Positions 6,089 to 54,543 of a stretch of 64,000 bases of DNA are shown here, one piece after another (within the stretch, counting starts at the first letter, position 1; every line of letters begins with the position of its first letter). A program made the position numbers and the translations under genes. The stretch comes from Podarcis tiliguerta (taxonomy: Eukaryota), in the NCBI GenBank assembly GCA_965153285.1, contig OZ229119.1, one strand, 5' to 3'. The notes beneath the pieces were generated by a model, which searched no databases, was not told where the DNA came from, and was given only the letters and a program-made list of their open reading frames with translations.

Positions 6089-6788
6089 ATTTAGATAGTG
6101 TGCAAATCCATGATAAAACATGACACTCAGAAGTAGGTATCAATGGTGAGGTGTTTCAAGACTTACTTCAAAATGGCCTGATATAGTCTTCACTCCAAGC
6201 TCCATGAGGTTTTAGTCTGCATATGGAGCTGAGAGGGGAACCTCTGGCCCAGAAGCTGAATGCGACCCTTCAGATCTCTCTATACAGTTCTCAGGACTTT
6301 TCCAAGGTAATTTCCTTCTCCGCAGGCCTCACCCCTCACTACCTCTATAACACACCCTCCTTGAGATGGGCGGGGTATAAATTATAAATTATTATTATTA
6401 TGAGCTTGGCTGGAATGTGTCCTTGCAGTGGCAGACTTTGGGTTTTCAAATTTCAGTGGTGCCCTGTGCAACGCCAAAATTCGGCACCCTCTGGTGAATT
6501 ATTTCAAATGTGTTTTCAAATAAATCACTTGTAGTTTTCAAAATGGTCTCTGACAAACAAGCAAACAAAATCTATTGGAGTGTCTAGAGTGCATGATTGT
6601 CCCAAATGCCCCTGGGGGAGTGATGGCATGTGATGAGGTGACATTCCTCACAGGGAAATGGTACAGAAAAAAAGATGGCTGCCTAAATGGGGGCAGCCAT
6701 TTTCTTCCCATACTGTAGCCCTGTGAGGGACTTGCAGCCACATATAGCATGCAGCAGATATTGCCTGTTAAACAAAGGGGATTTGAAA

Positions 6789-6846
6789 AGGAAGGAAGGA
6801 AGGAAGGAAGGAAGGAAGGAAGGGAGGGAGGGAGGGAGGGAGGAAG
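6789..6846 (+). repeat. (GGAA)n/(GGGA)n microsatellite
   Basis: Seen directly. Confidence 0.9.
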
Positions 6847-21792: not shown

Positions 21793-24700
21793 ATCCAACC
21801 AACCCTTTCCCTCTTGGTCAAATTTCAAGAGAAAGAAAAATGTATGTTTCAATTGAAAGAGAAGGGGAAAGAAAGCCAGAGGCTCATTTCATGTGTCAAG
21901 GCAATACACAAGACACCTGCAAATGGATTGTTGTTGAAAGTCCTCCAACATTTCCTGTTATCCTTAAGCAGACAATTTTCACACTCTGTGCACACAAATT
22001 AAAATTTGTAAAGCACTTTAATATTATCAAACCTAAACACTATAAATGTAAACATGTCATTCAACGTTTAAATTGAGCTAGGGTCAGAGAAAAAGGTTAT
22101 AAGAAAATGTGAACCATAGTGAACCGTCATCCAAAACAAAGATCTGGAATCATTCTGAGAGTTCAGTTAGCATCTTTTTGGTTTGTTTTTCAGTTTAATT
22201 TTCTCCGAAGTACCATTCTCAACTGTATTTGGTTTCAGCTGAGGGATGGGAATACTGACATAGCTGCCAAAGGCAGGCTTAATCAGTAGGATCAAACCCA
22301 GCTGCTTAATAAACCTTAAGAAGTACTAGTAAACTGAGATTTCCCAGTCCCAAGGTTTCCAAGCCAACATTAACTTTGGAGAAGTCCCTGTAGTGTTGGG
22401 TGATGATCTAAACTGAACATTCAAAATGATGGTTTGCTTCATCACCAAGGGAAAACAGCACAATGCCCAGGACCCAGATTCCAGAGAAGAGTTATGGTAT
22501 GGAGTTTAGAATCAAGCAAGGGAGATATAGTGTGCTTCCATTAGAACATGAAAGCCCTGCTAGCAAGGCTAGAGGTGATCGAATATATTTTCGAACCATG
22601 AAGAAAAAAGGTGGCAGGTGTGTAGATAGAGGTATTCAATGCATGCAGTTTTCTCTCCTTCTCCCCCATTTTTAACAGCCTGGGCCCACATCAAACAACT
22701 TCCAGACACATTGCCTGAAAGTTGCAGGGGTGGGAGGACAACCTAAAATCCCTCTTCTCTCCAAACCTGAATATTCACAAGAAGAGAAGCACTAGTTTGT
22801 ACAAAATGTAATAGAAAAGAAAACCATATTTACAAATGAAATGAATGCCTTCTCAACTGCTCTTATCGGAGGGTTCACTCCATGTTCTGCAGACTGCTAA
22901 GCAAGCATTATTTTCTTTACAGGAGAAAGAAGAGAGGAACAAAAAGGCGTTCTACTCCTCCAACCATGGAAAGGGCATCCCTCCTTCCATAACTTGCTTA
23001 GTAAATCCAGAGGAGGTGGGGGAATCCGATTTCACAAAATGTTCAGGCCCTTCCTCCTGGCCTCTGCCTACCAAAAAAACAAGGCCTTCAGTTGGCTTAA
23101 ATGCAAGAAAGGTATTAAGATAAAGCCAAGTAGGGTATGGTTGGAAGGATACACGAGAAGAGAATCAGCTGCAGGAAATGTGGCTCGAAAAAGAATGGCT
23201 GCTTCCAAAGCTCAGGGCCTGTGCCTGTCCATGCGTTCAGTTCTACTGCAATGTGCCCAAGATAGCCGAAGAGCACTTTTCACAGTCCTTTCCAGTTAGG
23301 AAAGCAGAACAACAGACCCATGAAAAAGTGAGGTGCTTTGCCACATTTTTGGGAAGCAACAATGGACCTGTTGCCCTTACCTGAGGGTTCCTGCTGTAAA
23401 CGAAACAATATCGCTTCTAACAAGTGTCTCATTTTAACTTGCATTTACAGTTATTCCTCCTTGGTAGCCAAACTGCTGTTATCAGTACTATATGCACTGA
23501 GGACAGGGCCAGAACAACTCTCAAGATGCTAAGTGATACCGCTTTTGCACTTTTGAACCTGCCGGTCCCCTTCACAACAATATTCCCCACATCTTTCCAA
23601 CTCTGCTCTCCAGTCGTCACCACAGCATCTGTAGGATCTGATGATTCATCTCCTCATGCCCTGTGGAAGACAAGCCATGTATTTCCACAACACTATAATT
23701 ATCAAATATAAGAATATATTCAATAAATACACATATACACATGTCTGAGTTGTGCTGGCCCTATTCCCACCACCACCACCTTCTTCCACTTTCTACTCAG
23801 AGGAAATACACCATCAGCAGAGAAAGCCTTTCCATTATTCATCTTGCTCGTGTTGCATGATATGCTGGAGGAGGGAGCAATGGCTGAGCCTTCTCCCTGC
23901 CAGATTAAATTCATCAGAACAACTGTGGAGCTTGAGTTGCCAGCCCTGCTCTTCTTTTCATTCGCTGCCCTTTATGTTCCCTTGCATTGGAAAGGTTTGC
24001 TCTGCTGGGTTTGTCTACTAAATATCGTAGCGATAAGAAACTCATGTTGTTACGATGGTTCGTGTCAATTAAGCTTGTGCATAAACCAACCCATATTTGA
24101 TATTTCACCATTTCAAAATTAACAAGTTGTTCATGAGTAGCACAAAACCTGCAACAAAACCTCCCCTGGGACCCCAACATTTGAATTTTCCCAAGACTTT
24201 TGCTGAAAGTTTCACTGGCATTCGCTTTTATCATTCCAATTTGTCTTTCAGAAGTGACCTCACTGGGTTACTGTTGACTGGACTACTGGCTAGATCTGCA
24301 TACATATCAAACCTCCCCTCCCCCTGGTAAATATACCAAGATTTCAATACATTTTTATCTTCAGTATATATATATGTGTATATGTATATATGCAACTCCA
24401 TATTTCAGCCTTTAACCCACAGAGTCTTCACAAAAGAACTGAATGATTTTTTGCATGTAATCAACATAAAATGCATTAAGTTGATCCCACACTATTCACG
24501 TCCCATCAATTTTGCTTAAAAGTACATATGTAAGAAGACCTGTATCTTCTTCATGCCCATTCTATCTCTTCCATTCTCCGCCTCAGGCCACCTTCTCGTA
24601 TCTGTACTAACCATCACAGTTTGGCGCCGAGAAAACCCCAAACTCTGCGGCTATTGCTCCCACTCGTATGCTGGCCTCTCCTCAACCATGCCTTTGCCTT

Positions 24701-24984
24701 TCCCAACTGTGAAAACACAAGCTAAGCTACTAAGCTCTGACATGTGATGGCCAGGAATGGAACTGTGAGTGGAGAAATGAAAAGAGATCATCGGGGATGG
24801 GGGATCTGGGGAAAGAAAGAGGTGGCACTTCGCATCAGCGCTGCCTAAGCAGAACTCCAATACTCCACAAAGAAAAAAAGAGTAGCAGAAGAGTAGCAAA
24901 TGGGAACTAGGTCTGAACCCACCACCTGCCCCTCCCACACGTTGCATTTCCAGCACCATCCCCTCCCATGCTTTTCCCCATCAC

Positions 24985-26883
24985 TCAGACATCAGACTCA
25001 ATACTGGAAAGTTTCTCATAAACNNNNNNNNNNNNNNNNNNNNNNNNNNNNNNNNNNNNNNNNNNNNNNNNNNNNNNNNNNNNNNNNNNNNNNNNNNNNN
25101 NNNNNNNNNNNNNNNNNNNNNNNNNNNNNNNNNNNNNNNNNNNNNNNNNNNNNNNNNNNNNNNNNNNNNNNNNNNNNNNGAAGTCTGGCCTGGCCTTGGG
25201 CCCTCCTGCCACCACAGGCTGCCTGAAGAAATAGGATTTGCTGCCGTGGAGCAAGCACTGGTCATCCCCAAAAGTGGGGATGAAAGGGTTTTGAGTGACC
25301 CGGTCGGGGTAGAGCGACTTGCTGAGCATATAACCACCACTAATGCCAGGATTGTTGTGGTGGTGGTGGCTGGTGGCGGGCACTGAGGACTTGTTGTTGG
25401 CAAAAGTGGACTCGCTGGCTGGCATCTCAAACATGTGGGCATAGGGGCTTCCCTCCAAAAAGCGGCCCTTGTCCTTCAGGCTGACGCTGCGGGGGGCCAG
25501 GGCGGCGTCTTCCTTCTGCAGATCCACAAAGGTGTCATAGGAGTGCTGCCGGCGTAGCTTGTTGCGATTCTTCTTCTGCACCTTGGAGGCAGAGTTGGAA
25601 GGGCTCTGAGGATACTTGGTAGTGGAGGTGCTGGTTGCCACGGGCACAGGAGCAGATGGCTGATCCAGCTCTTGGAGGGAGTTGTCCTCACTGATGTCGT
25701 AGAGGTTTCCGGCCTTCTTGCAGGCTTCACACCGGATGCATGGCTGGCGGGTGGAATTCTGCCCCACCACGGTCGGAGTGTAGTTATGCAGCTTTGATGG
25801 GCAACTGCGGCAATAGTTAGCGCCAGGGCGTTCCTCCCAATCGAGATTGGTGAGGTTTTTCTCCCATGGCGCTGGTACCCCACTCACAACACTGTGCTTG
25901 TGCTCATTGTTTGCTCCAAACTCCCCCGACCCGTGTTTGTGGTGGGTCCTGTTAGTACATGTCCCTGCTCCCCCTATAGTTTCACGCTTGAAGTCATCTC
26001 CCCGCTCTTTATAAATATCCGTCAGATCCACATGTTCCCAGTGCGGTGAGTTCTCCTTAGCCCGGAACTGGTCCAAATAGAAATCCCGTAGCCCTTCCTT
26101 GTCCCTAAAGTAGCGCTTATGGTCAGGGGAACGGGGACGCCGGCGATAGGCCAGTTCAATCTCATCAAACTCTCTCCGCGACTTGGCCGAGGCTGGGCGC
26201 TTCTTTAGACTATCTTTATACTGCTGTTTTCGCCGCTTTGCAGCATTGCCCTCAATGTTGCCATAAGTCACGGTATGAGTCGATATGTCCGAGACATCTG
26301 AACGGATCAAATCGTCGTGTGCCCCTCCACCGCTGTATCGGTCACTCTTGAAAGACAACTTGCCATAAAGGTCACCTAACTGGCCATGTTTGGCCGGCGG
26401 CAAACCGATATCTAATGGCTTCTTACTGAGAGATCGAGGCTGTGCGGAGAAGGGTGGATTATCACAGTCATACAGTCCATCGATGGAGCTGGCGCTCCCT
26501 ATGCTATGGGGGCGATGGTGGTGATGATAATGGTCTTGGTAAACATTGCTTTCTTTCAGCTGCAGATTACCAAAGGTCCTTTCCACCTCACTAATATAAT
26601 CACTGAAGAGGTTTTCCTCGCAGGGGGGGTTGTTGTAAGACTTGCAGTCGGAGTGAGTGAAGCTACGGCGGTGCTCAGAGATATCGTAGACAGAGGATTC
26701 GCGACGGATAAAATCCAGGGCACTTTGTGGTGAGCCATTGACACCTGAAAGGTTTGCCATGTTCTTTGCTGTTCGGAGCAGGCGCAAAATGTTGGAATGG
26801 GTATTGTTCATGGTGGCAGTGGGGGAGTTCATGGAAGAATGGCGGTCCTCAATAGCCACTCCATGGATGCAGCTGTAAATACC
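24985..26883 (-). CDS. GRIN2B: GluN2B terminal coding exon (exon 13 equivalent), cytoplasmic C-terminal domain, 632 codons plus TGA
   Basis: TTGCAG acceptor, then [12 protein letters not shown]... Retains the CaMKII site LRRQHSYD, the Cys cluster CRSC...CIRCEAC, the YEKL endocytic motif and the ESDV PDZ ligand. TGA at 24985-24987. Positions 25024-25179 are N. Confidence 0.98.
25024..25179. other. 156-nt run of N (assembly gap or masked segment) inside the last coding exon
   Basis: Seen directly. It spans exactly 52 codons between ...KARPDF and VYEKL..., and the frame is preserved. Confidence 0.99.
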
Positions 26884-28329
26884 CTGCAATGGGGGAAAGC
26901 AAAGGGAGGTTAGCAGAGGAGCATTCCAGCAGGGGAGATGCAGAGCTTGGAGGACTGAGACAAAGAACCTTGTCCTTTGCTAAATAGGATCCTCAGTGGG
27001 ATATTGTTGGGAGATGAGACAATCTAGACACTATCATAATGGTTCTTCCACTTTTAATCTTCCTCCACCTTTGCCCCTCTACCCCTTGCCCTTTCATTAT
27101 TAAATTGAAATAAATCTAGAAATTTATTCAGACCTTTATTGAAGTGGTTTGGTTTTTTTAGACATGGTTGCAGATGTTTCTTACAGATCAGATGCTCAGA
27201 GTGCTGTGGTCAGGAGTACTGTTTAAGGGTTACACCTTAAGCACTAGCTGCAGGATGTGATCACTGTTTTCCAATGCCCTGGTAAGCGCTTCAGACAGTT
27301 TGTAATCATGCACATGAGATTATTCTGAATCTCCAACTACTGCAGATAGGCCATTAGACAAGCCTTTGATCCACAGCACTTGTTTACATTTAGTTTCTAG
27401 GCATGATTCAAGGTGATACTTCTTACTTAGAATACCTAAAAGAGTCCAACTCCTTCCTTTGCAAATATTCTTTAGCTTACAGATTTTGGAAACGGGTCTA
27501 ACCAGTCAGAAATTTGAGGCTGTCAGGACATGACTTTTAGAGGTACAACATATTGGTTCACTTGGCACAGGTTCCTGACCCTCTGCATAGCCTCTAGTCA
27601 TTGTTATTCATCTTGATTACAGACTCTGACCCACAATTGCTGTATGAGTTCCAGCTCTTTCTCCCTAGTCCTGATAAAGAATTGTATAAATTAGGAAGTT
27701 GTACAAAATAGATTTTCCCAACCAGAATTATGCTGTCTTAATACTTTGTCTGAGTTTGACTTTTCTGGTCAAAGAATTCCGCATCCTAAAAATGGATCAG
27801 AGTTTTACAATTAAGAGCCTAGTCTGTTAAGCAAAGAAAGTAATGATGAAAAAATCCACATTTTAACAATGAACATTTACATTGTCACCTCCAAATCATC
27901 TTTAATCCTAGGAACTCAAACTGATGAATTTATTAAGTAAAAGGCAGCTTATGCAGGAGGATCTGATTCCTTAGTGCATCATCACACAATGTAATAATAT
28001 TGGCTGGGATCTGTCAATGCAGCCTTGTGCAGTTCATAATCTCTAACTGGACAGAGAAAGGAACTTTCTTGTATGTTTTCCACAGCTCATGAATTGGAGT
28101 GATAACTAGTAGCAGGGCCTTCTTACTGGTGGTGCCCTGGCTATGGAATGCCACCCCTCAGGAAGTTCTGCTTGCCCCTTAATTGTTTAGTTTTTGCTAC
28201 TTTGAAAACTCATCTCTTTCTGGAAGCATTTGGAAATAATTGGGTTTTTCAGGCTCTGATCTAAAGATAGCTGCTGTTTTAATGTTTTTAATGTAGTAAT
28301 ATAATTGTGTGTTTGTGAGTGTGAGTGAA

Positions 28330-28380
28330 AGAGAGAGAGAGAGAGAGAGGCGGACAGACAGACAGACAGACAGACAGACA
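28330..28380 (+). repeat. Compound (GA)n(GACA)n microsatellite
   Basis: Seen directly. Confidence 0.9.
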
Positions 28381-28985
28381 ATTTGTTGTGTAGCTATTGT
28401 ATGCTGCCATGAGATTCTTACTGCTGAAGGGAGATTAAAAAAATCTACTAAATAAATAATAATATTTGAAATAATGAAAGGGAAAGAATTTTGGAATTCA
28501 AGGAAATTCATACAGAAATTATTTGCTAGAGAGAAAGTTTCTGATCTAAGTGTCCTTTGTTTCTGTCAGTAAAATCTACTCAGAAACATGGGAGAGGGGA
28601 GTTACCTAAAAGTCAGAGTTCTACACAATGTTCTGCTCCAAAGAAACCCCCCTTCTTGTTTTGAGTCTTTCATTATGCTTCTCCAAGACATTTACTCTGA
28701 AGCAAAGCTGAAATAGTGGCCACTCTCCAACCCCTGAACCAACACTTGAAAAAGTCTTGCTGTCCCATTCAGAGACCAGGTCCTGCCTTCACCCAAGCTC
28801 CTCTTATAGTGCTGCTTGAAACAGGTGGCTTCCACCTGCTGCATGGCAGGGATGCTCTTGTTCTTTCAGATAAATTACCAAGAATTACAGAAAACCTTTT
28901 CACACCTTGTTGAAGAAGTGGCTGAGGCCACTGTCCCAAGAATTTAGATTCTCCCAACCTTTCAAAGTTCCATTTTCTTTTCCTA

Positions 28986-29495
<510 letters not shown>

Positions 29496-29956
29496 CTATT
29501 TAGAAAGGAAAGATGCTCCCCAGGGCTTGTTTTTCAGCTGGAACTCACTGGAGCTCAGTTCCAGCACCTCTCTGGTGGGTGCCATTGCCATTCTAAGAGA
29601 ACAAGGGAGGCATTCATGGTGAGTTCCGGCACCTCTTTTTCTAGAAAAATAGAACTGATCCTCCCTAACCCTCCAGTCCTCGAATTTCATTTCCACTTAT
29701 GTTGGATTTACCTAGCCGGAAAACTATACTGGGGCAGTGGGGTGGTGGGTCCACATATAAATTTATTTTTAATAAATAAATAATAGCTACAAAGTAGAAT
29801 AGCCACAATACACCAGAAGTTCATAGTACGGGTGAGTAACAAGAAAATGATAGCATTGCTGCTGACTAGTTGTTGTTGTTGTCTTAGCATTAGTGGTAAG
29901 TAGGGGATAATAGCTTCACTCAATGGAGACACACTCCTAGTTCCTCATCCAGATCA

Positions 29957-30205
<249 letters not shown>

Positions 30206-32344
30206 CTAAATCATGTGATGCTAAAGGAAGTTGAGAACTCCCATGTGACCTCAGGTAACCAAACACAGAGGAAGCCAGGCGGAACAATTGCTTGGGCACA
30301 ATCAGCATTGAGATGAAGGCAGGTTGTAGCATCACCACACAAATCTGCCACATCTTCCAATGGATCTAAACAGACACTATGGCCAATGGTCAGAGATGAT
30401 GGGAGTCTAGCAACATTTGGAGGGCCACAATTTAGTTAACTTTGATTTAAAGATGCCTATGCAGCCCATGTAAACCATTTCATTTATGACTGAACAATGC
30501 TTTCTTCTTCAGCTTGTGAATTCAGCAGCATTTCTACCGTAACTATGTTGTGAATTAAGAAAGCAAAGCAGACCATTTCCCCAACCAAGCAGCTGGAAAG
30601 ATAGCATTAACCAAAATGTAATTACTCAAATTAGCTTCAGCCAGGACCCCTGCTTATGGGAAGAATCCCATAGGCATCTTTAAAGATGACAAGTGGTTAG
30701 GAGATCAAGTTATGTCTCCCTATGAGGGCAGTAACGCTAGCTTTATGGTGTCCCACTAACCTCAAATGGAAGAAAGAAGAAAAAGAATCAGTGCCCAATT
30801 GGAAAAATAAATTACTAGTCCCAGCAATAAGGGTGTGTTTGCACCAGCTACATTTTGAAGCATTCAAAGATAGAATTGCTGCCTTGTTCTGTTGCACCAT
30901 GAAGCATTTCCTGTCTTCATTGCTCAAATACTTCCACATGGATTTACATAATGTGTAGTTTGCCTTTATATGAGTAGAAAGGGTGGCATAGTGATATTCC
31001 CTTCCCCTCCCCCTCAAACAAGAAAAATAGACCCAAAGCTACCCTGTCTGGTAACCTGGAAATTATCCTTATTTGTTCCAGGTTATCAGGTGAGTAGCAG
31101 CCTAGCATGACAAATAAAAACTTTAATTTGCATTCTCCAGGGAACAAACTGTGTATAAGCAGTCCTCCTTCCACCAGTAGAATAATCTGATTTCTGGGCA
31201 ATGAAGAGGAGGAAGAGGAGAGATAGGAATTAATAACCTCAAATGTAATGGAAAAATCATAGCTCGCCAGGTGGGTCAGAAGGTTTCTGGGACAGCAGCA
31301 GCTGCCCCCAAAAAGAAATTTGTTGAGAAATAATTTAAGTCACATGGCAAGCCATTTACATAGGTGGAGAAGTTGTATGGAGCCTTTGCAAAATGGTTCA
31401 GTTATGGTTCCCTGGCACCCAATAATTTAAAAGTTCTGTTCAGGCAACCTGAATCATGCCTTACAGCAAAGCATAAGTGGGGCCCTTACCCTCTCCCATT
31501 ATAAAATGTGCACTGACTAGCTGTACCCTAGTATCCACATCTGCAGGGAGGAAGCCTTTGAGGCACAGCGTGACATGTGAAGGCCTCTTCCTTGCAGACA
31601 TTTGTGCTTTATGTGCAGATGCCAAAGGCATAATGGAAATATATTCGTTGTATGCAAAAATGACAGCTATTGAACATAGAAGACCCCAAAGAGGTGAAGT
31701 GATTCTCCACAACTGGTTTTTCCTCAGAAGATTGCTATTCTGTCACTGATGATCTAGACTCCTTCATAAAACACATGTGACATCAAGAGCAAGGTTAGTC
31801 AGTGTAGTACTGCTCCCAGTTTATACGCTGATACAGAACACGAGCTGAATCAATGGAACAGGGCTACCTGTGAGTTTACACAAGTATAGTATGTGTGTGT
31901 TTACCATGGAAAAGATGCAGCCCTCATATAATAGTGGTTAGGATCCCCAGCTTACTAATATTTTTATATAGCAATTAACATTAGGGATTAAGATAATATC
32001 ATAGTTATTTCAATAATTATGAATTGTAGGTGATGTCTAGCCACAACTATTGCACTGCATCTTAAGGCAATATTTCCAGCAGCTAATCTACTTTTCAGAA
32101 AGTCTGCATTGATGCAAGAAGGGGAAGAATCATTGTTATATTACTTGCACATATCTAGCCGAAAAGAACAAATAATAATAATAATGGATGAGATAAATTG
32201 TTCTTGACAACGTTGTGGTACATGGATTATACGCAATGTTTTAGCAGCAGGAATATTAGGGAGAAGGTTCTTCAAAATCCCAAGAGAATTACACACACAG
32301 GTTTACATTAGCAACCTTATTCTTTAGGGAAGAGGCAATCTCAC

Positions 32345-32505
32345 CCTGTCTTTAATGAGGATAGCGCATCTCCCACCGATCTTTGGTTGAACTTCACCAT
32401 GTAGGCGTGCATCAGTTCGTAATTGTTGCGAATGTTCCTCTCTGTACTGCCATTAGGAACTGTCCCAAAGCGGAAAGGTGGTGAGAAAGCATTTGGGTTT
32501 TGGAA
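32345..32505 (-). CDS. GRIN2B: GluN2B coding exon (exon 10 equivalent), S2; not in the supplied ORF track
   Basis: Hand translation: [54 protein letters not shown]. Polypyrimidine tract and CCAG acceptor, GTGAGA donor, 161 nt. Confidence 0.97.
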
Positions 32506-33096
32506 CTGGAGAAAAAGAGAGAAAGAAAAGCTCTCAGGTTGTTTTCTCAGTGGTTATTTGAGAGAGAACCAGATTTTCTGGGATATCAAGTTGGGAGTTA
32601 TTTCAGAGCTTTAATGGCATGTTGGAACCAGGCCACAGCATGCCATGCATAAGGACTGTAATCCAAGAAAGCTATACATGTTCATGAAGGAGAACCATGC
32701 ACGATGCAGTAGCTTTATTTGATAGTTTCACTGTAACACGTTATACTGCCAAAGAGACAAGAGGCTGAATTAAAAAGCAGTACAGCAATTCCACTATCAA
32801 AACCAAAGCATGGGAAACAGTGAAATCACCTGCTGCATTTGCAACCACATACAATGTATTTCAACTGTAATATTTGTTTTAAAGCTGACACAGAACAAAA
32901 TATTTCCCTAAACAGAAGAATATTTTCTACTAAACAGTTGAAATTATCTTCAAATGTGCTTGCCAATCCTGAGATGGCGGATGGAATGACTAGCCATTTT
33001 TTAAAAATCTACACACAAAAGAACACTCTAACTTATAATAGTGGTGTGTAGATGAAGAGATGCAGCTATGCAAGTATAAGTAGGCTTAGACATCCT

Positions 33097-33244
33097 GGAT
33101 AGCTCAGTTGCTTAGAGAGTATGATAATGCCAAGGTTGCTGGTTTGTTCCCCATATGGAACAGTTGTATATTCCTGCATTGCAGAGAGTTGGACTGAAAT
33201 GATCCTCAGGGTCCTTCCCAACTCTACCATTCTATGATTCTATG
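33097..33244 (+). mobile_element. Short tRNA-derived SINE with CR1-type tail
   Basis: A-box-like GGATAGCTCAGTTG and decayed B box GGTTTGTTCCCC; 3' end GTCCTTCCCAACTCTACCATTCTATGATTCTATG. Related tails at about 43645-43720 (+) and 44995-45085 (-). Confidence 0.75.
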
Positions 33245-36200
33245 TAGAATGCTCAAGATTCCCATTGGCTGAGTCCACTGGCGTTACCAGTGTCAGGGAG
33301 CAAGTTTAGACATGCATAACAATATCCATTAGTCCACCTTTTTACTTTCTCCTATATAAATTGATTGCTGCCAAATTTTTTTTCTAGGGAGGAAAGTAAA
33401 CTGCTGCATTTGAGGATATTGGTACAGTGAGAGGGCAAAACTCTTCCCCAAAACTGAATGGCCTAGCTCATACTTGTTGGGGTCTCATTGTGTGTGCAGT
33501 GGGGAGTGCAATGCATGTTTGTAAACAGAGGTACACTATATTACATACAACCTCATGACTCTTTAGTATATAGAAACTCCCTTCCACTCATGATCATGAC
33601 CGACATTTTACATGCAATTCTCTTCTGGGACCCAAAGGTAATAATAAATAAAGAATACAGAAAAATACAGCTGATACAGAAGGAGCAACATAATTACGCT
33701 GGAACTAAAACTAGCCACATCATCTGAAAGCCTACTTGGTCCTAATGATTCTCTGAAAGCTGGCATGGTCTGAAACAGGTGTAGGAAACTCCCCCCCCCC
33801 CCGCCCCCGCTGTTGCTGAACTTCAACTCCCAACAAACAGAGCTGGTGACCAGGAATGATCGGAGTTGACCTTCAGCAACATCTGGAACTCCAGAGGTTG
33901 TCTACATCTGGTCTACAATCTAAATCAGTGAGATCCACATGTATCATCCATTTTAATTTATGTAAATTTAAAATTGCCTGGCATTGAAGTGGAATTGGAA
34001 AAATACAGTGACTCGTCTTCCTACTAAACATTATAGCATTTTATGGAAATAATTTCTCAAAGAAAGAGTATGATCTATTGCAAGAGCTTCAAGTTATAAG
34101 TTCATGAATCAAAAACGTTAATGCAAGATAATGATTTCTTAAGAATGTTTTGCACATTTTCCTAAAGGGGAAGACAGAAGTTTACAAATACTTCTGGGAA
34201 GTATTTTCCATATCCACAAGCCCCCTGCAGAATAAGTATGTCTGCGTTAATTCCCTCTGCTGCCTTCACTTTCTTCACATAATGGATTTTGAGTAAAGGG
34301 GATTCTAATCCCCGTCTTAATTTGATATGTTGAACAGTTTCCGTACATCATCCAGTCAAAAGCACTGCTGTGAGTATTCACATTGTTTAATAATATGCTC
34401 TGTGGCTGATTCAGAACAACACTTCTTCAAGCTTCTGTACCCTCCTCTTCACTGAGGACATCATTATATAGACCCAGTCAGAAGACCCTTGAGACATTCC
34501 ACTTCAATAAGTTTTGACCCCACCATCGAGATGAGACAAGAGCATTCCATGCACCAGGTTCACTATGGGCAAATACTGTGTCTGGTAATGGTCATATACA
34601 TAATCACCACTGTATACTGAAAAAATGCTGAACACCTCTCATATCTCTACATTGTCCTAGTTCATACCCAGAACATACCACAATGTGAAATTTAAGCTGT
34701 TTTAGTATTTCAAATTGTTGTATGTTCTAATGTATTGCAATTTTCCCCTGATCTTATGGAAGAACTGCAAGAATGAGATCTTCAGGGTCCTTGCTTACTG
34801 TGGACATTAGCAGATGATTACAGAGCAAACAAAAGTCATTTAATGAAAAATAGAAGTATTAGAGGAAAAATAGATACAAAATTGACAAGATTAGAAGGAA
34901 CTGACAATGAAATGAGGAATGAAACTAAACCAGAGATGATTGAAATGGAAAATGGGAACAGAAATTACCTAGAGGATCTGGTTGCTTTGGTCCTGTCTCA
35001 TTTCTCAGATATCCCAACAATACTTGTATGGAATTTAATCATTTACATTGGGACGGCAAAGTTTTAATCCTTCCCCACCCATGAGTCTGACAAAAATGGC
35101 CCTCCACCACAATTACAAAAAGGTTCCCATTGGCACTAATGGAGCTTGCTTCCAATGCTGATTGCAGTTTAATGGTGGTGTTCTGTGACTGGGGAGGAAA
35201 TAGTTAATTGTCCCTTTTTGTGCATTGTAGTTCCAATAAAACACTCACCCTCCTTCCATGCTGGGTGGCAATTTTTCAAAAATTTGTAATCCATGCAATT
35301 ATTGTCTGTTTTGGCTATAAGACAATAATTTCTACCTTCCAGGCCTACAACAGGTGTTAATTAACATAGCAAAGCTAGGGTGATTGTGTTATCCCCAATT
35401 ACTTGTGTTATGAATGGTCACTTAGCTTATCTTAAGCTTCACACAGAATTTTCACAGACCGCACTTTTTGCAACTCATGGGAATATGGCTCCATCTATAA
35501 CCTCCACCCACATGTGCATGTGTGGCCACACAACTGAATATAACACTTCATGCATCTGACAAAGTAAATTCTAGTCCATTAAGACTTATGCCATAATACA
35601 CCTTTTAATCTATCAGATACCGCAAAACACTTGGTTACTTTTTTCTGTAGCAGACTCACAAAGCTATTTGTCTCAAAGATGCTTCCAAATCTTTTCTAGG
35701 ACCGCTGGCATCTCCCTTCATTTGAAGTGATGCTCCTCATTCCACAATGTATTGAACAGACCATATCTAAAGGCAGCAAAGTTTAACTGATGGCTACAGT
35801 ACAGAGAACATCTCACTCTCACTCCTCTTATTTTATTTTGGCAGAAAAGGGTAGAAAATGGGATGGAAGCCATCTTGCAGGCCCCTTGCTGCTCCTGGTA
35901 AATTCATCCCTCATAAAACTCTTTTCAGGCTGAACTGCTGTAAGATTTTATATGCTACTTGGTTTACCCAAGTCACAATCAATGCTTTCTGGGGTTTTAT
36001 GAGCAGTAAACTTTAGCACTGACAATTACGAAAACTCCTTAAAATCCATACACAGAGAAGTAGTGGTGGGAAAAGTGAGTTGAGATGTAAGCCAGGGGCC
36101 CAAAATCAGCATTAAGAGGTGGAAATTATGCCAAGGGCTTTCAAGTAAATGGAAAATTCCCTCCTCACTGCTGCAGAGAGGCATTTTGCGTGGCTTAGTA

Positions 36201-38101
36201 GCTACTTTTGCCAATCTAATAATGGGCACAATAAAGGAGACAGTGAAAGTTGCTTAACTGTCAAACCTGATATTGATATTGTAGCAAAAATATCACACCA
36301 CCCCAATCTCTGAGCAGTGCGAGATTCCAGGGGTCAGGCACTTACCCAGGGTTTGTGCTTCCTTTAGGAATGAGGCATGGTGGAGAATGTGGTGTCTTTA
36401 TGATAATATGGTTTATTGACAAATATATAGCACCTGAGCTATGATGGAGGGGCTTTCAGCATTACACACTGAGAGGGTCCTGCCTTGGATTCAGACAGTC
36501 AGCCCACCTTGCTCTGACACCCACTTTTGCCAGCTTGGAAAATGCAACTATCTTTCCTCTTGCTTACATCAAGCAAAAACTCTTGTTCTGAATAGAACTG
36601 CTCTCCTTCCAACTCTAAAACTCTACTTCAGAAACGGTTTGTCTTCATAAATAATTCTGAATTGAGAAAGAGGCCCCTCCCATTTGCTCTCTGGCACTGA
36701 GCCACTCCCTTTGTCCCAGCTAACGACTCATCATTAGTATGTCATCACCAGGCTGGCCCCTGGCTTTTTCAAAATGCTAAATTCAATCAGCGCCGGATTC
36801 AGGGAGGTGCAGGTGGTTCCCCCACAAAGGGTGCCAAGACGAAACAGCGCAAAATTGAGAAGATCCATAATTGAGAAGATCCATTTGGGGGTCACCAAAT
36901 TTTGGCTTTGCACAGAGCACCATATGATGAAAGATGACCAAAGTCTGTCTCTCATTCAATATCTGGCATCCCAGAATTAGGAGGGGAGTCCAGGAACCCC
37001 ACAAACTTGTAACCATTGGCCTAGCAAGGTCAGGTGGTACCCAGTGTGGAAAATGTCTTGTAACCCCTCCCCCATTGAATTTTATTTTTATTTATTTATT
37101 TAGCCAGCCTGCAATAATGGTTTGACTCTTTTTGGGGGAGCCAGAATTGTTGAGCTTTTCTGGGGAACGTTTTGGCAGCGGAAAGCCTGTGTGTGCAAAA
37201 GCCACACTGTCTCTCACAGATGTGGAGTGCCGCACAGCATTTTGTCACACCCCTCAGAGGTGGCACCTGGGGCAGACCGCACCCAACACACCCAGCTTGC
37301 AACGCCTCTCCTTGTAACCATATAAACTATGGACCTATGCGGTGCACACACAGTAAACTTATCTTACATGGACACAGCAGTTATATGAAAAGTATACTAG
37401 GGTTGCCATATTTCAAACAGTGAAAATCTGGACAGAAAAGTGTTCTGTATATGTCTGGGGAAATCCAGACATATGGCATCCCTAAGTATACACCATCACT
37501 TCCTACTGTAAAAAACATCAGACTGCCAATGTGTACATGTAGTTCAAAACTTAGAGCTCTTTGAAAATAGCTGTGATCCTTACCAGCAGGGGTGGTACAT
37601 TTTTCTATGGTAATACCAATACCTTCTGCTGGCAGAATAGATAAAATCCCTACCAGTACTGTGCAGAAATGTGCGTTAAGGAGTACTGAGGATGGCACGA
37701 GTGTTTCTGTGCTGCTAATAGATGGATGGGGGAAAAACATTTACTGGGATACAGGACATTAAAAAAAAACTTAGACATGAGAAGCCTGATAAGGTACATT
37801 GCACAGAACACAAGAATCCATTCTAAAGGGACAAAATAAAAACCTTTTAGAAAGGCAAAGAAGGCTTTGTACCTGTAAGTCATTCCAAAATCAATAGTAC
37901 TTAGATGTGCTTTACTCTGCACAGTAGTGGGTAGGTGGGTGTGGGAAGGGGTGTGGGATCACATGTGTTGCAAAGTATCATGCCACATTTTATTACCATA
38001 TATAAAGTGCAGGCTAAATCCATGATCCCAGCACTCTCAGCCCGAGCTGTGTCTCTACACTAGGAATAACCAACAATAGGCTACATGTATGTTTGCCAAT
38101 A

Positions 38102-43834: not shown

Positions 43835-43894
<60 letters not shown>
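43835..43894 (+). repeat. Compound (TC)n(AC)n microsatellite
   Basis: Seen directly. Confidence 0.92.
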
Positions 43895-47300: not shown

Positions 47301-48583
47301 GGTAGGAAACCTGTTGCTCTCCAGATGTTGTTAGACTCCAGTCCCCCACCCAGACCCATCTAACATGGTTAATGGTCAGTGATGATGGCAGAACCCTCTG
47401 AAGAGTCACAGGTTCCCCACCATGTGCTAGGTGAGATCTCTTCCTGTAACAAGTGTTCCATAGCTTAAGAACTGGAAAGTGCTGCCTGGCACCTCAATCC
47501 TGAATATATTTACTCAAAAGCAGGCCTAATTGATTTGAAAGGAGCTTAGTTTCACAGAAAGTATGCTTAGGATCCCAGTCTATAACAATGAGGATGTACT
47601 TATCTTTAAGTAAAATCCTACTGATTTTTAAACTAGGCTGTTCAAGTGTTTAAAGGTAAGGATGTGTTTTGCTAGATTATGTTTCATATCCAGGGGCCTA
47701 GCCGAATAATAAGATTTATGTGCCTTGGATTTTAAGATTAAAATGTTGAAAAGAATAACACTAAAAACCAGTAACATGGACAAATCAACTGCACCAAAAA
47801 GCGCAGAATCATAGAAATAAACTGCAATCCTATTTCTATTGTGAAAAATAACCCCTTTATTTCAAATAAGTTCAGCATCTTCTATGAATGTATACATTCA
47901 GAGATATGAACACCTGCCTGTTACGCTATCACCGATTTGTCCTTTAACCTTTGGCCCCTTCCTTTGATCTTAAAGAGTAAGGAACTGGGAAATGGATATT
48001 TAAGGGAACAATTATCTGAAGGGGGAAATAATTGGAGGCATGTATACATGGGAATTTGTTTGGAGGGATCTGCTAGAGGTAGAAAATAGGTTCAGCAAAA
48101 ATGAGCCATGAGAATGATGAAACTGGGTTTAGCTATGGAATCAGAACATAGGAAGATCCCTGCTAGGCTCACAGAAAATCCCAACGAATTCTACATTCTG
48201 TTTCAGCATAAGCAAGATGTGAAGGTGAGACCAACACTGCCTTTTTCGTTCTCAAGAATCATTTGATATTCAGAGGTATACTGCCCCATCATGATTCATT
48301 ATCAAAGGTAAAAGCTTCTGATTAACCTGTCCCCCTATAATTTGTTTAATTGTTTCAAAAGCAACAGAGCTATTGGCCTCCATTATACCTGCCACAAGAA
48401 AAGCATTGTATGAAGAGTGAGCTGCATTCTGGGAGCTGTTGTTGGTGAAAGGTGCTGAGAATTGTTAGGAGGTCACCAATTCCTCTCACAGAACTACAAT
48501 TTCCAAAGTTCCCTGGGATGAGGGATTGATTGTTAAATGTAGCTCTGGGAATTGTAGCTCTGGGAGGAAACAGGGTATCTATA

Positions 48584-50954
48584 CCGTATTTTTCGCCCTA
48601 TAGGACGCACCGTCCCATAAGGCGCACCTAGTTTTTTGGGGGGGAAATAAAGGAAAAAAATTATTTCCCCCCCAGGCGCGGGGTTGGGGAAGCCCGAGCT
48701 TCCCCCGACCCCAGCCCCCAAACAGGCAGCTCTCTGCAAGCCGTGGGAGCCCAGTGCTGGCTCCCGCTGCTAGCGGAGAGGTCCGCGAAGCCTGGGCGCG
48801 CTGAGCTCAGCGCGCGCAGGCTTCGGCATGCAGGCACCTCTCCGCCAGCAGCGGGAGCGTTCCCGCTGCTAGCGGAGAGGTCCGCGAAGCCTGGGCGCGC
48901 TGAGCTCAGCGCGCGCAGGCTTCGGCATGCAGGCACGTCTCCGCCAGCAGCGGGAGCGTTCCCGCTGCTAGCGGAGAGGTCCGCGAAGCCTGGGCGCGCT
49001 GAGCTCAGCGCGCGCAGGCTTCCGCATGCAGGCACGTCTCCGCCAGCAGCGGGAGCGTTCCCGCTGCTAGCGGAGAGGTCCGCGAAGCCTGGGCGCGCTG
49101 AGCTCAGCGCGCGCAGGCTTCGGCATGCAGGCACGTCTCCGCCAGCAGCGGGAGCGTTCCCGCTGCTAGCGGAGAGGTCAGCGAAGCCTGGGCGCGCTGA
49201 GCTCAGCGCGCGCAGGCTTCCGCATGCAGGCACCTCTCCGCCAGCAGCGGGAGCGTTCCCGCTGCTAGCGGAGAGGTCCGCGAAGCCTGGGCGCGCTGAG
49301 CTCAGCGCGCGCAGGCTTCGGCATGCAGGCACCTCTCCGCCAGCAGCGGGAGCGTTCCCGCTGCTAGCGGAGAGGTCCGCGAAGCCTGGGCGCGCTGAGC
49401 TCAGCGCGCGCAGGCTTCGGCATGCAGGCACCTCTCCGCCAGCAGCGGGAGCGTTCCCGCTGCTAGCGGAGAGGTCCGCGAAGCCTGGGCGCGCTGAGCT
49501 CAGCGCGCGCAGGCTTCGGCATGCAGGCACATCTCCGCCAGCAGCGGGAGCGTTCCCGCTGCTAGCGGAGAGGTCCGCGAAGCCTGGGCGCGCTGAGCTC
49601 AGCGCGCGCAGGCTTCGGCATGCAGGCACCTCTCCGCCAGCAGCGGGAGCGTTCCCGCTGCTAGCGGAGAGGTCCGCGAAGCCTGGGCGCGCTGAGCTCA
49701 GCGCGCGCAGGCTTCGGCATGCAGGCACGTCTCCGCCAGCAGCGGGAGCGTTCCCGCTGCTAGCGGAGAGGTCCGCGAAGCCTGGGCGCGCTGAGCTCAG
49801 CGCGCGCAGGCTTCCGCATGCAGGCACCTCTCCGCCAGCAGCGGGAGCGTTCCCGCTGCTAGCGGAGAGGTCCGCGAAGCCTGGGCGCGCTGAGCTCAGC
49901 GCGCGCAGGCTTCGGCATGCAGGCACCTCTCCGCCAGCAGCGGGAGCGTTCCCGCTGCTAGCGGAGAGGTCCGCGAAGCCTGGGCGCGCTGAGCTCAGCG
50001 CGCGCAGGCTTCGGCATGCAGGCACCTCTCCGCCAGCAGCGGGAGCGTTCCCGCTGCTAGCGGAGAGGTCCGCGAAGCCTGGGCGCGCTGAGCTCAGCGC
50101 GCGCAGGCTTCGGCATGCAGGCACCTCTCCGCCAGCAGCGGGAGCGTTCCCGCTGCTAGCGGAGAGGTCCGCGAAGCCTGGGCGCGCTGAGCTCAGCGCG
50201 CGCAGGCTTCGGCATGCAGGCACCTCTCCGCCAGCAGCGGGAGCGTTCCCGCTGCTAGCGGAGAGGTCCGCGAAGCCTGGGCGCGCTGAGCTCAGCGCGC
50301 GCAGGCTTCGGCATGCAGGCACCTCTCCGCCAGCAGCGGGAGCGTTCCCGCTGCTAGCGGAGAGGTCCGCGAAGCCTGGGCGCGCTGAGCTCAGCGCGCG
50401 CAGGCTTCGGCATGCAGGCACGTCTCCGCCAGCAGCGGGAGCGTTCCCGCTGCTAGCGGAGAGGTCCGCGAAGCCTGGGCGCGCTGAGCTCAGCGCGCGC
50501 AGGCTTCGGCATGCAGGCACCTCTCCGCCAGCAGCGGGAGCGTTCCCTCTGCTAGCGGAGAGGTCCGCGAAGCCTGGGCGCGCTGAGCTCAGCGCGCGCA
50601 GGCTTCGGCATGCAGGCACGTCTCCGCCAGCAGCGGGAGCGTTCCCGCTGCTAGCGGAGAGGTCCGCGAAGCCTGGGCGCGCTGAGCTCAGCGCGCGCAG
50701 GCTTCCGCATGCAGGCACCTCTCCGCCAGCAGCGGGAGCGTTCCCGCTGCTAGCGGAGAGGTCCGCGAAGCCTGGGCGCGCTGAGCTCAGCGCGCGCAGG
50801 CTTCCGCATGCAGGCACCTCTCCGCCAGCAGCGGGAGCGTTCCCGCTGCTAGCGGAGAGGTCCGCGAAGCCTGCATTCGCCCCATAGGACGCACCCAGAT
50901 TTCCCCTTCATTTTTGGAGGGGAAAAAGTGCGTCCTATAGGGCGAAAAATACGG
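48584..50954. mobile_element. Non-autonomous Tc1/mariner-superfamily (Tc2/pogo-like) DNA transposon, 2371 bp, carrying an internal tandem array
   Basis: Perfect 27-bp TIRs: CCGTATTTTTCGCCCTATAGGACGCAC at 48584-48610 and its reverse complement at 50928-50954. TA target duplication at 48582-48583 and 50955-50956. Subterminal TIR-like repeats CCCATAAGGCGCAC (about 48614) and TTCGCCCCATAGGACGCAC (about 50876). CCGTA termini with TA duplication are typical of Tc2-type elements. No transposase. Confidence 0.93.
48762..50873. repeat. Tandem array: 21 full copies plus 33 bp of a 99-bp GC-rich palindromic unit
   Basis: Unit TCCCGCTGCTAGCGGAGAGGTCCGCGAAGCCTGGGCGCGCTGAGCTCAGCGCGCGCAGGCTTCGGCATGCAGGCACCTCTCCGCCAGCAGCGGGAGCGT. 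Unit starts fall at 48762+99n up to 50841. Hand count gives 72/99 GC and 13 CpG per unit. Confidence 0.98.
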
Positions 50955-53900
50955 TAATTATCCAGAGCTACATTTATTAAGAGTGAGGGGAACAGGGATC
51001 TCCTAACAACTCCCAGCACCTTTCACAAGCTGTAGCTCTCAGAATTGCCTGGAGGAAGCCATGACTGTTTATAGTGGTATCATAGTGCTGTAAATATATA
51101 GTGTGAATGTGGCCACAGACAAACAATATCAGAGATGGCCTTACCATTAGGAAGAATGAGGCAGCCACCTGAGTCCATCTATTTTTGGTATATTTGAATG
51201 GTGCCAAATAATTCAATAGCTATTACCATTGTACTTCTCTAGTAGTTAGAGAAGGGGAAAGATGCATGTTTTTGCCTCCGATGCCAAAATAATTTGACTG
51301 GCCATAGGTACTATGGATTCTAACTGGGTATGGGTACTGTTACTCAGAGGCACAGAGGTCTTCAAACATTTAACTGGATTTAAATCAATCACACCAAAGG
51401 CCAGAATTTAGGGGGTGGGGGTGAAGGGACAAGACTTACCTCAAAACTAACACTTACGACAGACACAAACAACAGCAAGAGAAATCAAAATTGGGATGCA
51501 AGGGATTTTAGGAAAGTAATGTGCTAGATTGGAATAAGAAGACCACACAAGCAGACTACAAGCCCCAACAACTCCAACAATGTCAATGTTGCTGCTCCCA
51601 GCAGGAAAGGATTTATAGGTGTGTGCAGCATTAGGGCCACATGGGGCTGAGGGGCCTCCAAGCCCTTAGTGTGCCTTGTTAACTGAGAGGATAGTTTTGA
51701 AATGTGACTACAAGCAATGAATTGAGATGGTTGAATTCTAGCATTTTAGTTGTTTTGTTTCTACTGTTTGCTTCTCCTTCTTCCCAATTAAAATCAGTGG
51801 AGGCTGGTCCGTTAGGATAGAGGTCACCAACCTGGTGCCCATGAAGGCCTTCATTGGCATCCCTGAAGAGGGTTACCAGACTCAGAGCTTTCATTAAAAA
51901 AGAAGAAGATTCTAGCCCTTCTAATAAGAAATTTATCAATCATAACATGCAGGTACCTTTCTGAATAATTTCTTTCAAATGAGCCAGCCTGGCTGTTCCG
52001 GCCTCTCAATGTTTTTAGCCAATAAGTGAGGTCAGAGCTGTGACTGATATAGTGAGTTGTTTGGACCCCAGGCAATAGGAATCCATTCAGTCCTAACAGA
52101 GATGGATTTATAATGGTACAATTGCAGCAATTGCACTAGGGCTCATGGCAGCAGAGGACCCAAACACTGAGTTTTTAATTTTTTTAAAACAGTATGTCTT
52201 CAGCCCTTCTAGAAATAAAGCTACAAAGTGTAATGTGCAGGCAGCCTTCAAAGCTGTGGGTTGCCAACCTGATGCAAGCAGAGGGACGACTATAATCTAT
52301 CTTCAAGCTCCGCAGCATGGAGCATTTGCTGGAGTTGGAAGGATCCGCCAACTTCCAACTCCCATTGGCTATGATACTAACTCCTCCCCTACTTTCTGGA
52401 AGGATTTGCCTGGGCGGCTGCTGTGGGACAAAGTGAGAGGAGAGGAGAGGAGTGATAGTTGCTACACCTCTGGTGTTGGGGGTGGGGAAAAGTGCTGAGA
52501 CCATTTTACCTCCTCTTCTTTGGCTGCCCAGGGAAGGACTTTCTGAAAAGATGGGGAGCTAAGAAGTGTGGATGCAACACATACATTAAAAAAATGTTAA
52601 ACTCCCTCTTCCAAATCAGGCAGATCTTTATGTAATGGGAAAAGACAACAGGATTTCCAGCCACAGAACCTTTACATTACATGAAGTTTGGCCATCTATC
52701 CAAGAACCTGAAATCCAGAATACACCTTAAGGTAAAGAACAGCCCATGGTTTGGTACAAATGGCATTTAATATCTCAAAAGGGAGGGGGAGGGACATAGG
52801 AAGAAAGGCCTTTTAGCCCCAGGATTTGAATCTACCAACAATAATCCTGTGCTTCTTATACATGCTAATTCATCCATCAGCAACCACCGAAGACTCATCA
52901 TCTTTGATGGTTTGTGAGGTCAAAATGGGACAGAATGAATAATAAAAAAGGCACTGAAAAGGTCACAAATATTACGGACATCTGTCTTGAGGACATCTAA
53001 TCTAGGAGACTGTAGTGCCACCCTTGCAGCATATCAGACAAGCCTGGTTTTAACAAAGTATGATAAGATAATATTGAACTAATAAATATCATTATTGTTG
53101 CTAAAAAATAAACCAATGCACTAATGATAAACTAGAGCTTACAACACTATATTCATCAAGAGCTATGACCCATAAGCACAAGGAGTCCACCTCTGTGACC
53201 ACAACCTCTGTCTAATGCTGCTGCACAGCCCAGCCTACCATAAAACATCTGCATCTATAATTCACACAATTGCCAAAAAATCAGGAAATGAGAGCAAGGG
53301 AGAAAAAATATTAAGAAAATGGGTGAGGGAAATTTCCTTTCAGGGTTGCATCCCCATCCCTCATTCACCAATAACAGCAGAGCCCCAAATTATCAACTAC
53401 ATTGTAACTACATTAACTTGCATGAGGGTATTTTTTCTCTCCAGCCTAAGTACTTCCAACTATAGCTATTTAGCTGATATTCCTCCATTTTCTTAAGCTT
53501 CATGCTAAAATATATAACATATCGCTGCAATCCTGTGCACACTTATTTGGGAGTAAAGCCAATTGAATATAATGGGATTTCCATATAACTATGCATAGGA
53601 GTGGGCTATTGTGTATGGGGTGTGTGTGCTTAAATCCTATTTCTGCCATGGACTTAAGCATATCAGTGTCTGTTCCTCCTCTTTACAGGGAAGATAATAA
53701 TAACCTCTCAGAGCATTGCTGTGCAGCACTTCTCAGCTTGTGAGAAATTCCTAAGGAAACTGGAAAGCAGGAGAACAAAATCAGCCAAAGACAAAATGTT
53801 GTATTTGTCATACTTGCCCCAAGCAGAGTTCAAGTGGATTAAAGGGTAGCAGAAGGAATGGGAGGCAGAGCACTAGTTTATTAGTTCACAGTTGCTAAGA

Positions 53901-54165: not shown

Positions 54166-54543
<378 letters not shown>

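Follow-up and report, generated by a model that had tools for sequence, protein, structure and literature searches.

A 2371-bp (~2.4-kb) element lying in a GRIN2B intron is supported as one copy of a non-coding, non-autonomous, TA-targeting TIR element whose core has been tandemly amplified. It most probably belongs to an abundant MITE-type family with a chassis of 137 and 81 bp, the GC-rich double-palindrome cassette of which has grown in this copy to 21.3 units of 99 bp, most of this expansion having occurred in place or in the copy's immediate ancestor.

Anatomy and genomic setting of the element

The constituent features of the element and of the older repeat that hosts it are listed below, with coordinates referring to the 64-kb window, i.e., the whole stretch of DNA that was analysed.

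48426..48581, unstranded: left half of the older interspersed repeat hosting the insertion, of which 48426-48489 is inverted with respect to 50983-51045 (80% over 64 bp)
48582..48583, unstranded: left TA target-site duplication, read directly and marked by contig breakpoints at 48582
48584..48610, plus strand: left 27-bp TIR, perfect complement of 50928-50954
48584..48720, plus strand: left chassis of 137 bp, containing the TIR, both motif copies and two hairpins, one A/T on a G7/C7 stem and the other GC
48594..48624, plus strand: two copies of the 14-bp quasi-palindromic motif CGYCCYATARGRCG (48594-48607 and 48611-48624), forming a tight hairpin in the fold of 48584-48720
48723..48761, plus strand: eroded cassette edge unit, with 48723-48750 matching unit positions 70-97 at 22/28 (local alignment)
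48762..50873, unstranded: 99-bp array of 21.3 units, each unit consisting of two palindromes
50874..50954, plus strand: right chassis of 81 bp, with the inner motif copy at 50878-50891, a central hairpin, and the outer motif copy at 50931-50944 within the right TIR
50928-50954: right 27-bp TIR, reverse complement of the left TIR, inside the right chassis
50955..50956, unstranded: right TA target-site duplication, read directly
50957..51075, unstranded: right half of this older host repeat, inverted relative to the left half (outer limit approximate)

The TIRs, described as perfect in the initial annotation, are indeed reverse complements over 27/27 bp (48584-48610 on the plus strand versus 50928-50954). 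This reverse complement is the single further occurrence of the 27-mer in the 64-kb window, and chance matches were recovered in none of 100 shuffles even with 3 mismatches permitted. The TA duplication claimed alongside the TIRs is present at both ends (48582-48583 and 50955-50956); the adjacent flank bases differ, and no longer target duplication of 3, 4 or 8 bp fits. The previously estimated layout of a left arm of about 180 bp, 21.3 units of 99 bp and a right arm of about 80 bp likewise holds, the measured values being 178 bp, 21.3 units and 81 bp. Only the TIR and one motif are common to both arms, and no microsatellite was found within the element. The paired copies of CGYCCYATARGRCG are candidate transposase-binding sites, which a transposase might recognize at the ends of the element. 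Both chassis have pronounced folding potential as DNA (−39.6 kcal/mol, z −6.7 for 48584-48720; −28.2 kcal/mol, z −8.6 for the right chassis).

The array is recovered by TRF at 48762-50873 with a period of 99, 21.3 copies, 98% matches, 0 indels and a score of 4126, its length of 21.3 units being that of the assembly. Comparison unit by unit yields 15 variant letters in 2112 bp, i.e., the units are 99% alike. As single-stranded DNA the double-palindromic unit folds at −49.8 kcal/mol (z = −8.8 versus shuffles), and the hairpin potential of the array is strong on both strands. Compositionally, it has a GC content of 72.5% and 281 CpG dinucleotides, with a CpG o/e of 1.01 over 2112 bp, versus 0.07-0.17 in the flanks and 0.28 in the surrounding genome region. 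CpG islands are defined compositionally by a length over 200 bp, GC over 50% and an o/e over 0.6, and the array exceeds each of these values. Its preserved CpG content could mean either youth or a lack of germline methylation.

The host intron is ~24 kb long. A minus-strand exon at ~54274-54510 matches GluN2B residues ~594-672 with 162 bits (GluN2A, 157 bits), so that, read in gene orientation, the element lies ~3.3 kb downstream of the exon, in agreement with the distance from the pore-forming exon of an NMDA receptor given earlier. The older repeat hosting the insertion has a depth of 10²-10³ times the flank in all four sequencing runs compared below; in every one of them the contigs covering the orthologous flank end within this repeat, at 48522-48535.

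Family abundance, growth of the array and transposon class

We compared contigs and depth across the left flank, the left arm and two units in four runs (X1, X2, X3 and X6) from four related lizard species. The initial annotation had suggested a MITE family, and this comparison uncovers a very abundant one common to all four species. By k-mers, the repeat is covered roughly 10⁴ times as deeply as the single-copy flank, and the summed depth of the TIR bins relative to that flank is ~38,000× (X1), 24,000× (X2), 14,000× (X3) and 25,000× (X6); these family figures, like the unit counts below, are rough because contig depth is not copy number and short reads under-sample GC-rich hairpin DNA. The match of 76-83 contigs per run starts precisely at 48582 and is preceded by unrelated AT-rich sequence (agreement 0.35-0.36). 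None of the variant letters listed for the family contigs falls in the left TIR. Beyond 48720 the family contigs part from the GRIN2B-intron copy as loose ends, and contig depth falls at the border of the eroded edge unit (48723..48761).

Letters that distinguish this copy are unevenly distributed among the organisms. At the left-arm sites 48613, 48620, 48622, 48684 and 48755 its letter is the majority one in organism A and a minority one in B, C and D; its cassette letters at 48772, 48837 and 48846 likewise hold the majority in A but make up 0-8% of the depth in the other three organisms. Only in organism A is the 99-bp cassette variant found in the GRIN2B-intron copy common, at >10 times its abundance in B or C. 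The element had been called young: the dominance of its subfamily and cassette letters in A alone fits such a recent origin.

The array is not a one-off, as contigs spanning unit-to-unit junctions with other letters occur elsewhere in the genomes of all four species (31 contigs of X1, for instance, carry C at 48860). These junctions would also be expected if a master copy already bearing ~20 units had transposed, such that the family disperses ready-made minisatellites. However, the X1 depth is ~20,200 at the unique left edge (48755) versus ~22,000-38,000 inside the units, giving a genome-wide average, rough as depth is, of about 1-2 units per element, against which 21 units are an outlier. 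Moreover, G35, non-A64 and T99 are present in every unit of the array and are minority letters among the unit-like contigs of X1 (39%, 38% and 16% of the depth), so that the array shares three genome-wide minority letters, and it also contains variant units re-duplicated internally. Dispersal of preformed arrays is thus rather doubtful.

The array instead looks locally amplified, because only 15 of its 2112 letters differ and the edge unit on the left has decayed to 79%, and because variant units recur non-adjacently and position 77 is linked to position 64, in addition to the shared minority letters. Specifically, the same shifted-register variant unit is seen at three places that do not adjoin one another, and the variant at unit position 77 (G, once A) is linked to C64 of the following unit (4/7 versus 1/13, Fisher p 0.03). 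The suggestion that transposition is coupled with array growth finds no support in these data, which point to local amplification and an average of ~1-2 units per element.

We propose that in wall-lizard-type genomes the chassis of 137 and 81 bp carries the GC-rich double-palindrome cassette, and that its growth in the GRIN2B-intron copy, whether mostly local or in the immediate ancestor of the copy, would most likely have proceeded by replication slippage, unequal sister-chromatid exchange or gene conversion, each favored by hairpin formation. We infer such a slippage or exchange mechanism, together with the recent origin and the lack of a host function. The element, which the initial annotation took to be probably still mobilisable, may be mobilised in trans by a Tc1/mariner-superfamily transposase that would read the 27-bp TIR and the 14-bp motif present twice per end.

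Like a MITE, the element combines TIRs, a TA duplication, no coding capacity and a high copy number (as a rough, depth-based measure). MITEs typically reach at most about 600 bp (PMC3879986), a size that this copy exceeds at 2371 bp; stripped of the additional units it would measure ~390 bp, and the term miniature hence applies just to a chassis with a short cassette. No transposase is encoded, the long frames being only the stop-free frames of the repeat itself, and no autonomous partner with the same TIR is present in the 64-kb window. Scans for the TIR in metagenome, viral and prokaryote genome collections gave 0 matches each, which has no bearing on lizards. Judged from the sequence, TA and TIR would place the element only within the Tc1/mariner/pogo group and no narrower, so that the 'Tc2-like' label of the initial annotation is more specific than these features allow. 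Helitron, hAT and piggyBac elements are ruled out by the perfect TIR and the TA-only duplication. Tc1/mariner-type and Stowaway-like elements are expected to show a TA target, an AT-rich context, short TIRs and repeated subterminal motifs. Given that TA and TIR alone support the assignment and no transposase is linked to the element, another superfamily, e.g., a different group with 2-bp duplications, might be considered; this is unlikely, as dozens of sampled ends show a TA target within AT-rich surroundings and the short TIRs come with repeated subterminal motifs, both as predicted for Tc1/mariner-type and Stowaway-like elements.

Assembly, coding and host-function readings of the array

Two further readings have very little probability. 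The first is that the 21.3 copies are an assembly artefact, a tandem array over- or under-expanded: short-read contigs do collapse the array, but its 15 variant letters are irregularly spread without the period-2 or block pattern of a mis-joined array, it has no indels, and its 2.1 kb is far below the length of current long reads.

Under the second, the array would have been taken over by the host, serving GRIN2B as a regulatory element or as an unmethylated CpG island within the gene, or giving rise to hairpin RNA or small RNAs. Its composition (2.1 kb at GC 72.5% and CpG o/e 1.01 in a region at 0.28) and its hairpin potential on both strands are compatible with such a role. Against this stand the lineage specificity of the cassette variant and the dispersal of the same cassette over thousands of unit equivalents, which leave nothing to tie it to GRIN2B. 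In addition, unit position 77 bears a stem-breaking G in seven units and an A in one without a compensating change, and all Rfam matches are far below threshold. A host role is scarcely credible, and nothing suggests an effect on GRIN2B.

Neither coding nor RNA families account for the repeat. The Pfam matches to SAP and DUF6344 are sums of partial matches of 12-14 residues with 0 passing stretches. No Rfam threshold was reached, mir-503 scoring 31.6 bits versus 54 and mir-651 32.9 versus 106, as generic hairpin matches. A predicted-protein word search with the stop-free frame of the left arm found no relatives in a collection that apparently contains no lizard MITE calls.

The array, best read as amplified transposon sequence, poses an annotation hazard: it presents two stop-free frames of ~750 codons along with CpG-island and miRNA-like hairpin scores, none of which reflects a gene. 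With this element, the few vertebrate MITEs on record as seeds of minisatellites gain a squamate member. Its family offers a usable and unusually clean system for studying the birth of tandem arrays inside transposons and the speed of their turnover, because it is on the 10⁴ scale, has a short conserved chassis and palindromic CpG-rich cassettes, and includes cassette variants with >10-fold abundance differences between close species. More speculatively, and with considerable reservation, the family might be active today and spreading unmethylated, cruciform-prone, GC-rich cassettes through the genomes of wall lizards as portable CpG islands, whose turnover between sister species would give each species its own intragenic CpG islands, fragile sites or recombination hotspots, in this instance within GRIN2B.

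Comparison with known transposon-borne tandem repeats

A MITE with an internal tandem array is ordinary selfish-DNA behavior known from frogs, clams and flies. To call the element an undescribed system, as had been done, is thus an overstatement, MITEs with internal arrays being already on record (PMC3879986, PMC4079207, PMC9659126). For the lizard family itself, no description was found in the searchable literature, where no work on array-bearing MITEs of lacertids or Podarcis came up, and the TIR strings are absent from the relevant papers there.

Among vertebrates, miDNA4 of Xenopus tropicalis is a Tc1-mariner MITE carrying a satellite motif (Scalvenzi and Pollet 2014, per PMC9659126). Set against that description, the lizard element is similarly a non-autonomous Tc1/mariner-type MITE with an element-born monomer that has been tandemly amplified and homogenised; it differs in that its unit is a 99-bp GC-rich double palindrome of CpG-island composition. 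Xenopus laevis offers a further case in the Xmix MITE with its Xstir repeats (Hikosaka and Kawahara 2004, per PMC9659126): lineage-specific tandem repeats likewise ride on a MITE, but a table in the citing review derives Xstir from the TIR region (PMC9659126), whereas the lizard TIRs are single and the repeats central.

Tandem arrays also arise from interspersed elements in lizard genomes as squamate SINE-derived satellites, whose arrays are usually short with rare long homogeneous loci and of which there are few in lacertids (PMC10702118); these, however, come from retroposons (Squam SINEs), and DNA-transposon-derived arrays do not feature in that paper. The Drosophila virilis foldback element Tetris, with 220-bp repeats inside long TIRs (PMC4079207), is comparable as a non-autonomous DNA transposon with internal tandem repeats expanding to kb-size satellite-like arrays. 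The lizard element departs from it in its single 27-bp TIRs and central array, as opposed to the long tandem-repeat TIRs that define foldback elements.

Other tandem-repeat-containing elements include the bivalve DTC84/pearl-type MITEs and Drosophila DINE-1, SGM, PERI and mini-me (PMC3879986). In these elements, as in the lizard one, arms with inverted repeats flank a central core of repeats variable in number, and the palindrome in each repeat has been proposed as a hotspot of length change (PMC3879986); the lizard units are palindromic too. The bivalve and Drosophila elements contain at most ~5-6 repeats, their array is bordered on one side by a microsatellite, and their duplication is AA (PMC3879986), in contrast to the 21 units, lack of a microsatellite and TA duplication of the lizard element, which works like the pearl/DTC84/DINE-1-type MITEs and is not a member of that group.

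Ends and internal organization of the element

The MITE-type element is real and correctly described in the initial annotation, whose account of its structure (27-bp TIRs, TA, two arms and 21.3 copies of a 99-bp unit) is borne out by direct reading and repeat finding. Its parts are as follows:

48582-48583 and 50955-50956: TA immediately outside each end
48584-48610: left TIR, with its perfect reverse complement at 50928-50954
48594-48607 and 48611-48624: copies of the 14-bp motif at the left end
50878-50891 and 50931-50944: copies of the 14-bp motif at the right end
48723-48750: stretch at the end of the left arm resembling the unit
48762-50873: tandem array of the 99-bp unit

The left TIR has no further occurrence in the window other than its right counterpart, and 100 dinucleotide-preserving shuffles yielded no chance TIR match even with up to three mismatches permitted. 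The duplication is 2 bp, because the bases beyond the TA differ between the sides. The left (178 bp) and right (81 bp) arms are unrelated except for the TIR and a 14-bp quasi-palindromic motif, CGYCCYATARGRCG, found twice at each end; hence, it does not qualify as a foldback element. The left pair of motifs folds into a tight hairpin, and the right pair constitutes the stem of a longer one (-28.2 kcal/mol, z -8.6). Tc1-type ends are expected to have two transposase-binding sites each, and these motifs are candidates for such sites. The unit-like stretch closing the left arm matches unit positions 70-97 at 22/28 letters and is an eroded piece of the unit, which places the end of the conserved left end (137 bp, together with the right arm termed the chassis) near 48720; contigs from other family members diverge from the element just behind this same position.

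Tandem Repeats Finder reports the array with period 99, 21.3 copies, 98% matches and no indels, and a unit-by-unit layout leaves 15 variant letters in 2112 bp. The only other tandem repeats scoring >80 in the window are (AAGG)14.8 at 6788-6846 and (TC)20 at 43835-43874. The unit, termed the cassette, comprises two palindromes with a single-stranded DNA fold of -49.8 kcal/mol (z -8.8), and its half-unit-shifted register folds at -45.4 kcal/mol (z -8.0). The array has a GC content of 72.5% and 281 CpGs (o/e 1.01), as compared with 43% GC and a CpG o/e of 0.28 in the whole window and a CpG o/e of 0.07-0.17 in the 1 kb on either side of the element. Just one of the 15 variants resembles a CpG transition, namely A at position 77 of unit 8, where the neighboring units have G. 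This CpG content might reflect either very recent homogenization or an escape from germline methylation.

Growth of the array and its family in four lizard species

Four lines of evidence favor local amplification and homogenization of the array over a random sample of family units: (1) its units are 99.3% alike; (2) its edge unit is eroded, as expected of exchange that evens out an array's interior more strongly than its edges; (3) units with a variant at position 77 tend to be followed by one with C at position 64 (4/7 vs 1/13, Fisher p 0.03), and this shifted-register variant unit is found three times at non-adjacent places, implying that already mutated units were re-duplicated; and (4) G35, non-A64 and T99, common to all its units, are minority letters among the unit-like contigs of run X1 (species A). 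Eight units have G or A at position 77, which disrupts pairing in a stem and is left uncompensated, indicating no visible selection on hairpin integrity. Growth probably proceeded via replication slippage, unequal sister-chromatid exchange or repair-associated template switching, helped by the palindromes; a palindrome-aided mechanism of this kind was proposed for DTC84 (PMC3879986).

A public run search recovered matches to the stretch in runs from four related lizard species, A-D. Logan contigs from one run per species were placed on 47950-48960 at 85% likeness.

Table. Abundance of the element's TIR and cassette, as summed contig k-mer depth, which is not copy number.
Species (run); single-copy flank depth; TIR bin 48596-48629; TIR/flank ratio; cassette depth/flank (48762-48960)
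A (X1); 13.1; 500,993; about 38,000; about 2,250-3,000x
B (X2); 29.2; 710,287; about 24,000; about 125-240x
C (X3); 6.2; 85,719; about 14,000; 40-55x
D (X6); 11.1; 278,502; about 25,000; 490-1,250x

Among the matches listed, 76-83 contigs per run in X1, X2 and X6 begin matching exactly at 48582 and are preceded there by unrelated, AT-rich sequence (agreement 0.35-0.36); such breaks are characteristic of the terminus of a mobile element that targets TA. Divergence between the window and the orthologous flank is about 1% in A, B and C and 3.4% in D; in all four runs the flank contigs stop at 48522-48535, inside an older repeat. The window carries T at 48080 and A at 48139, against A and C in all four runs; its letters there are either errors or alleles private to the individual assembled. 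A 12-bp stretch at 48124 is missing from run X1, and positions 25024-25179 of the window consist of 156 N, either masked sequence or a gap.

The element's letter at left-arm sites 48613, 48620, 48622, 48684 and 48755 predominates in A (53-85% of depth) but is the minority letter in B, C and D; for sites 48772, 48837 and 48846 in the cassette, the share of its letters is 63-98% of depth in A as against 0-8% in B, C and D. Together with the depths, these shares indicate that the element's subfamily and cassette variant were amplified in the lineage of A. Unlike cassette depth, chassis depth varies less than 3-fold among the four species; cassette turnover is faster than chassis turnover.

A unit-to-unit junction with C at 48860, a letter absent from the element's array, occurs in 31 contigs of X1 and 5-20 of the other runs, showing that tandem units are present elsewhere in these genomes; several borders between chassis and cassette are likewise represented among the contigs. 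Per-position depth in X1 is about 20,200 at the unique left edge (48755) and about 22,000-38,000 within units, giving, for elements that have this left edge, a mean of about one to two units, a figure that GC bias against 72% GC hairpin DNA could make too low. The 21 units of this copy are an outlier and, judged by depth, long arrays are the exception in the family.

Gene context, host repeat and coding potential

The surroundings of the element include:

about 54274-54510 (-): exon matching GluN2B residues about 594-672 (pore region; SYTANLAAF motif at 54357)
about 29957-30205 (-): next GluN2-like open stretch, ligand-binding-domain-like, downstream of the pore exon
48426-48581 and 50957-51075: halves of the older inverted-repeat element hosting the insertion

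Against solved structures, the pore exon scores 162 bits with GluN2B vs 157 bits with GluN2A, and on this small margin the host gene is likely GRIN2B. The GluN2-type gene lies on the minus strand of the window, and its two exons delimit an intron of about 24 kb; in gene orientation the element indeed sits 3.3 kb downstream of the pore-forming exon, as first annotated. The insertion occupies the central loop of the older repeat, whose halves are 80% alike over 64 bp, with an 11-bp perfect stem adjoining the insertion site. In all four species the older repeat has a depth 10^2-10^3 times that of single-copy sequence, and it is present in hundreds of copies. A few contigs of single-copy depth fuse other copies of it directly to a MITE end (joints 48470>48582, 48505>48581 and 48534>48582), which could reflect either coincidence or a preference for inserting into hairpin loops.

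Stop-free frames run through the array on both strands (48632-50884 (+), 751 codons; 48664-50907 (-), 748 codons), because on each strand one frame of the 99-bp (33-codon) unit is free of stops. Pfam returned SAP (E 4e-07, above its cutoff) and DUF6344 on these frames only as sums of many partial repeats, with no single stretch passing; a word search for protein relatives of the frames found none, and no Rfam family reached threshold for the element. We accordingly reject a gene reading, the frames being a by-product of the unit and the Pfam hits repeat-summed and partial; the array can mislead automated gene prediction and domain annotation. The element is most likely selfish, without host function.

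Relationship to known repeat-containing MITEs

Within the literature searched, the TIR string appeared in no paper and lacertid elements of this sort were not described, and a squamate study of TE-derived satellites was confined to SINEs (PMC10702118). The proposal of an undescribed system is overstated, as the element belongs to a known class, the MITEs carrying internal tandem repeats. Its Tc2-like affiliation, its continued mobility and a coupling of transposition with array expansion, all suggested in the initial annotation, are hypothetical. Established examples are DINE-1, SGM, PERI, mini-me, pearl and DTC84 (PMC3879986) and Tetris (PMC4079207), with Xmix/Xstir and the Tc1-mariner MITE miDNA4 of Xenopus (PMC9659126) as vertebrate cases. 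The lizard element resembles these in its mode; however, it has neither the microsatellite module nor the AA duplication that define the pearl/DTC84 group, nor the repeat-built long TIRs that define foldback elements. Compared by description only, miDNA4 is the closest to it.
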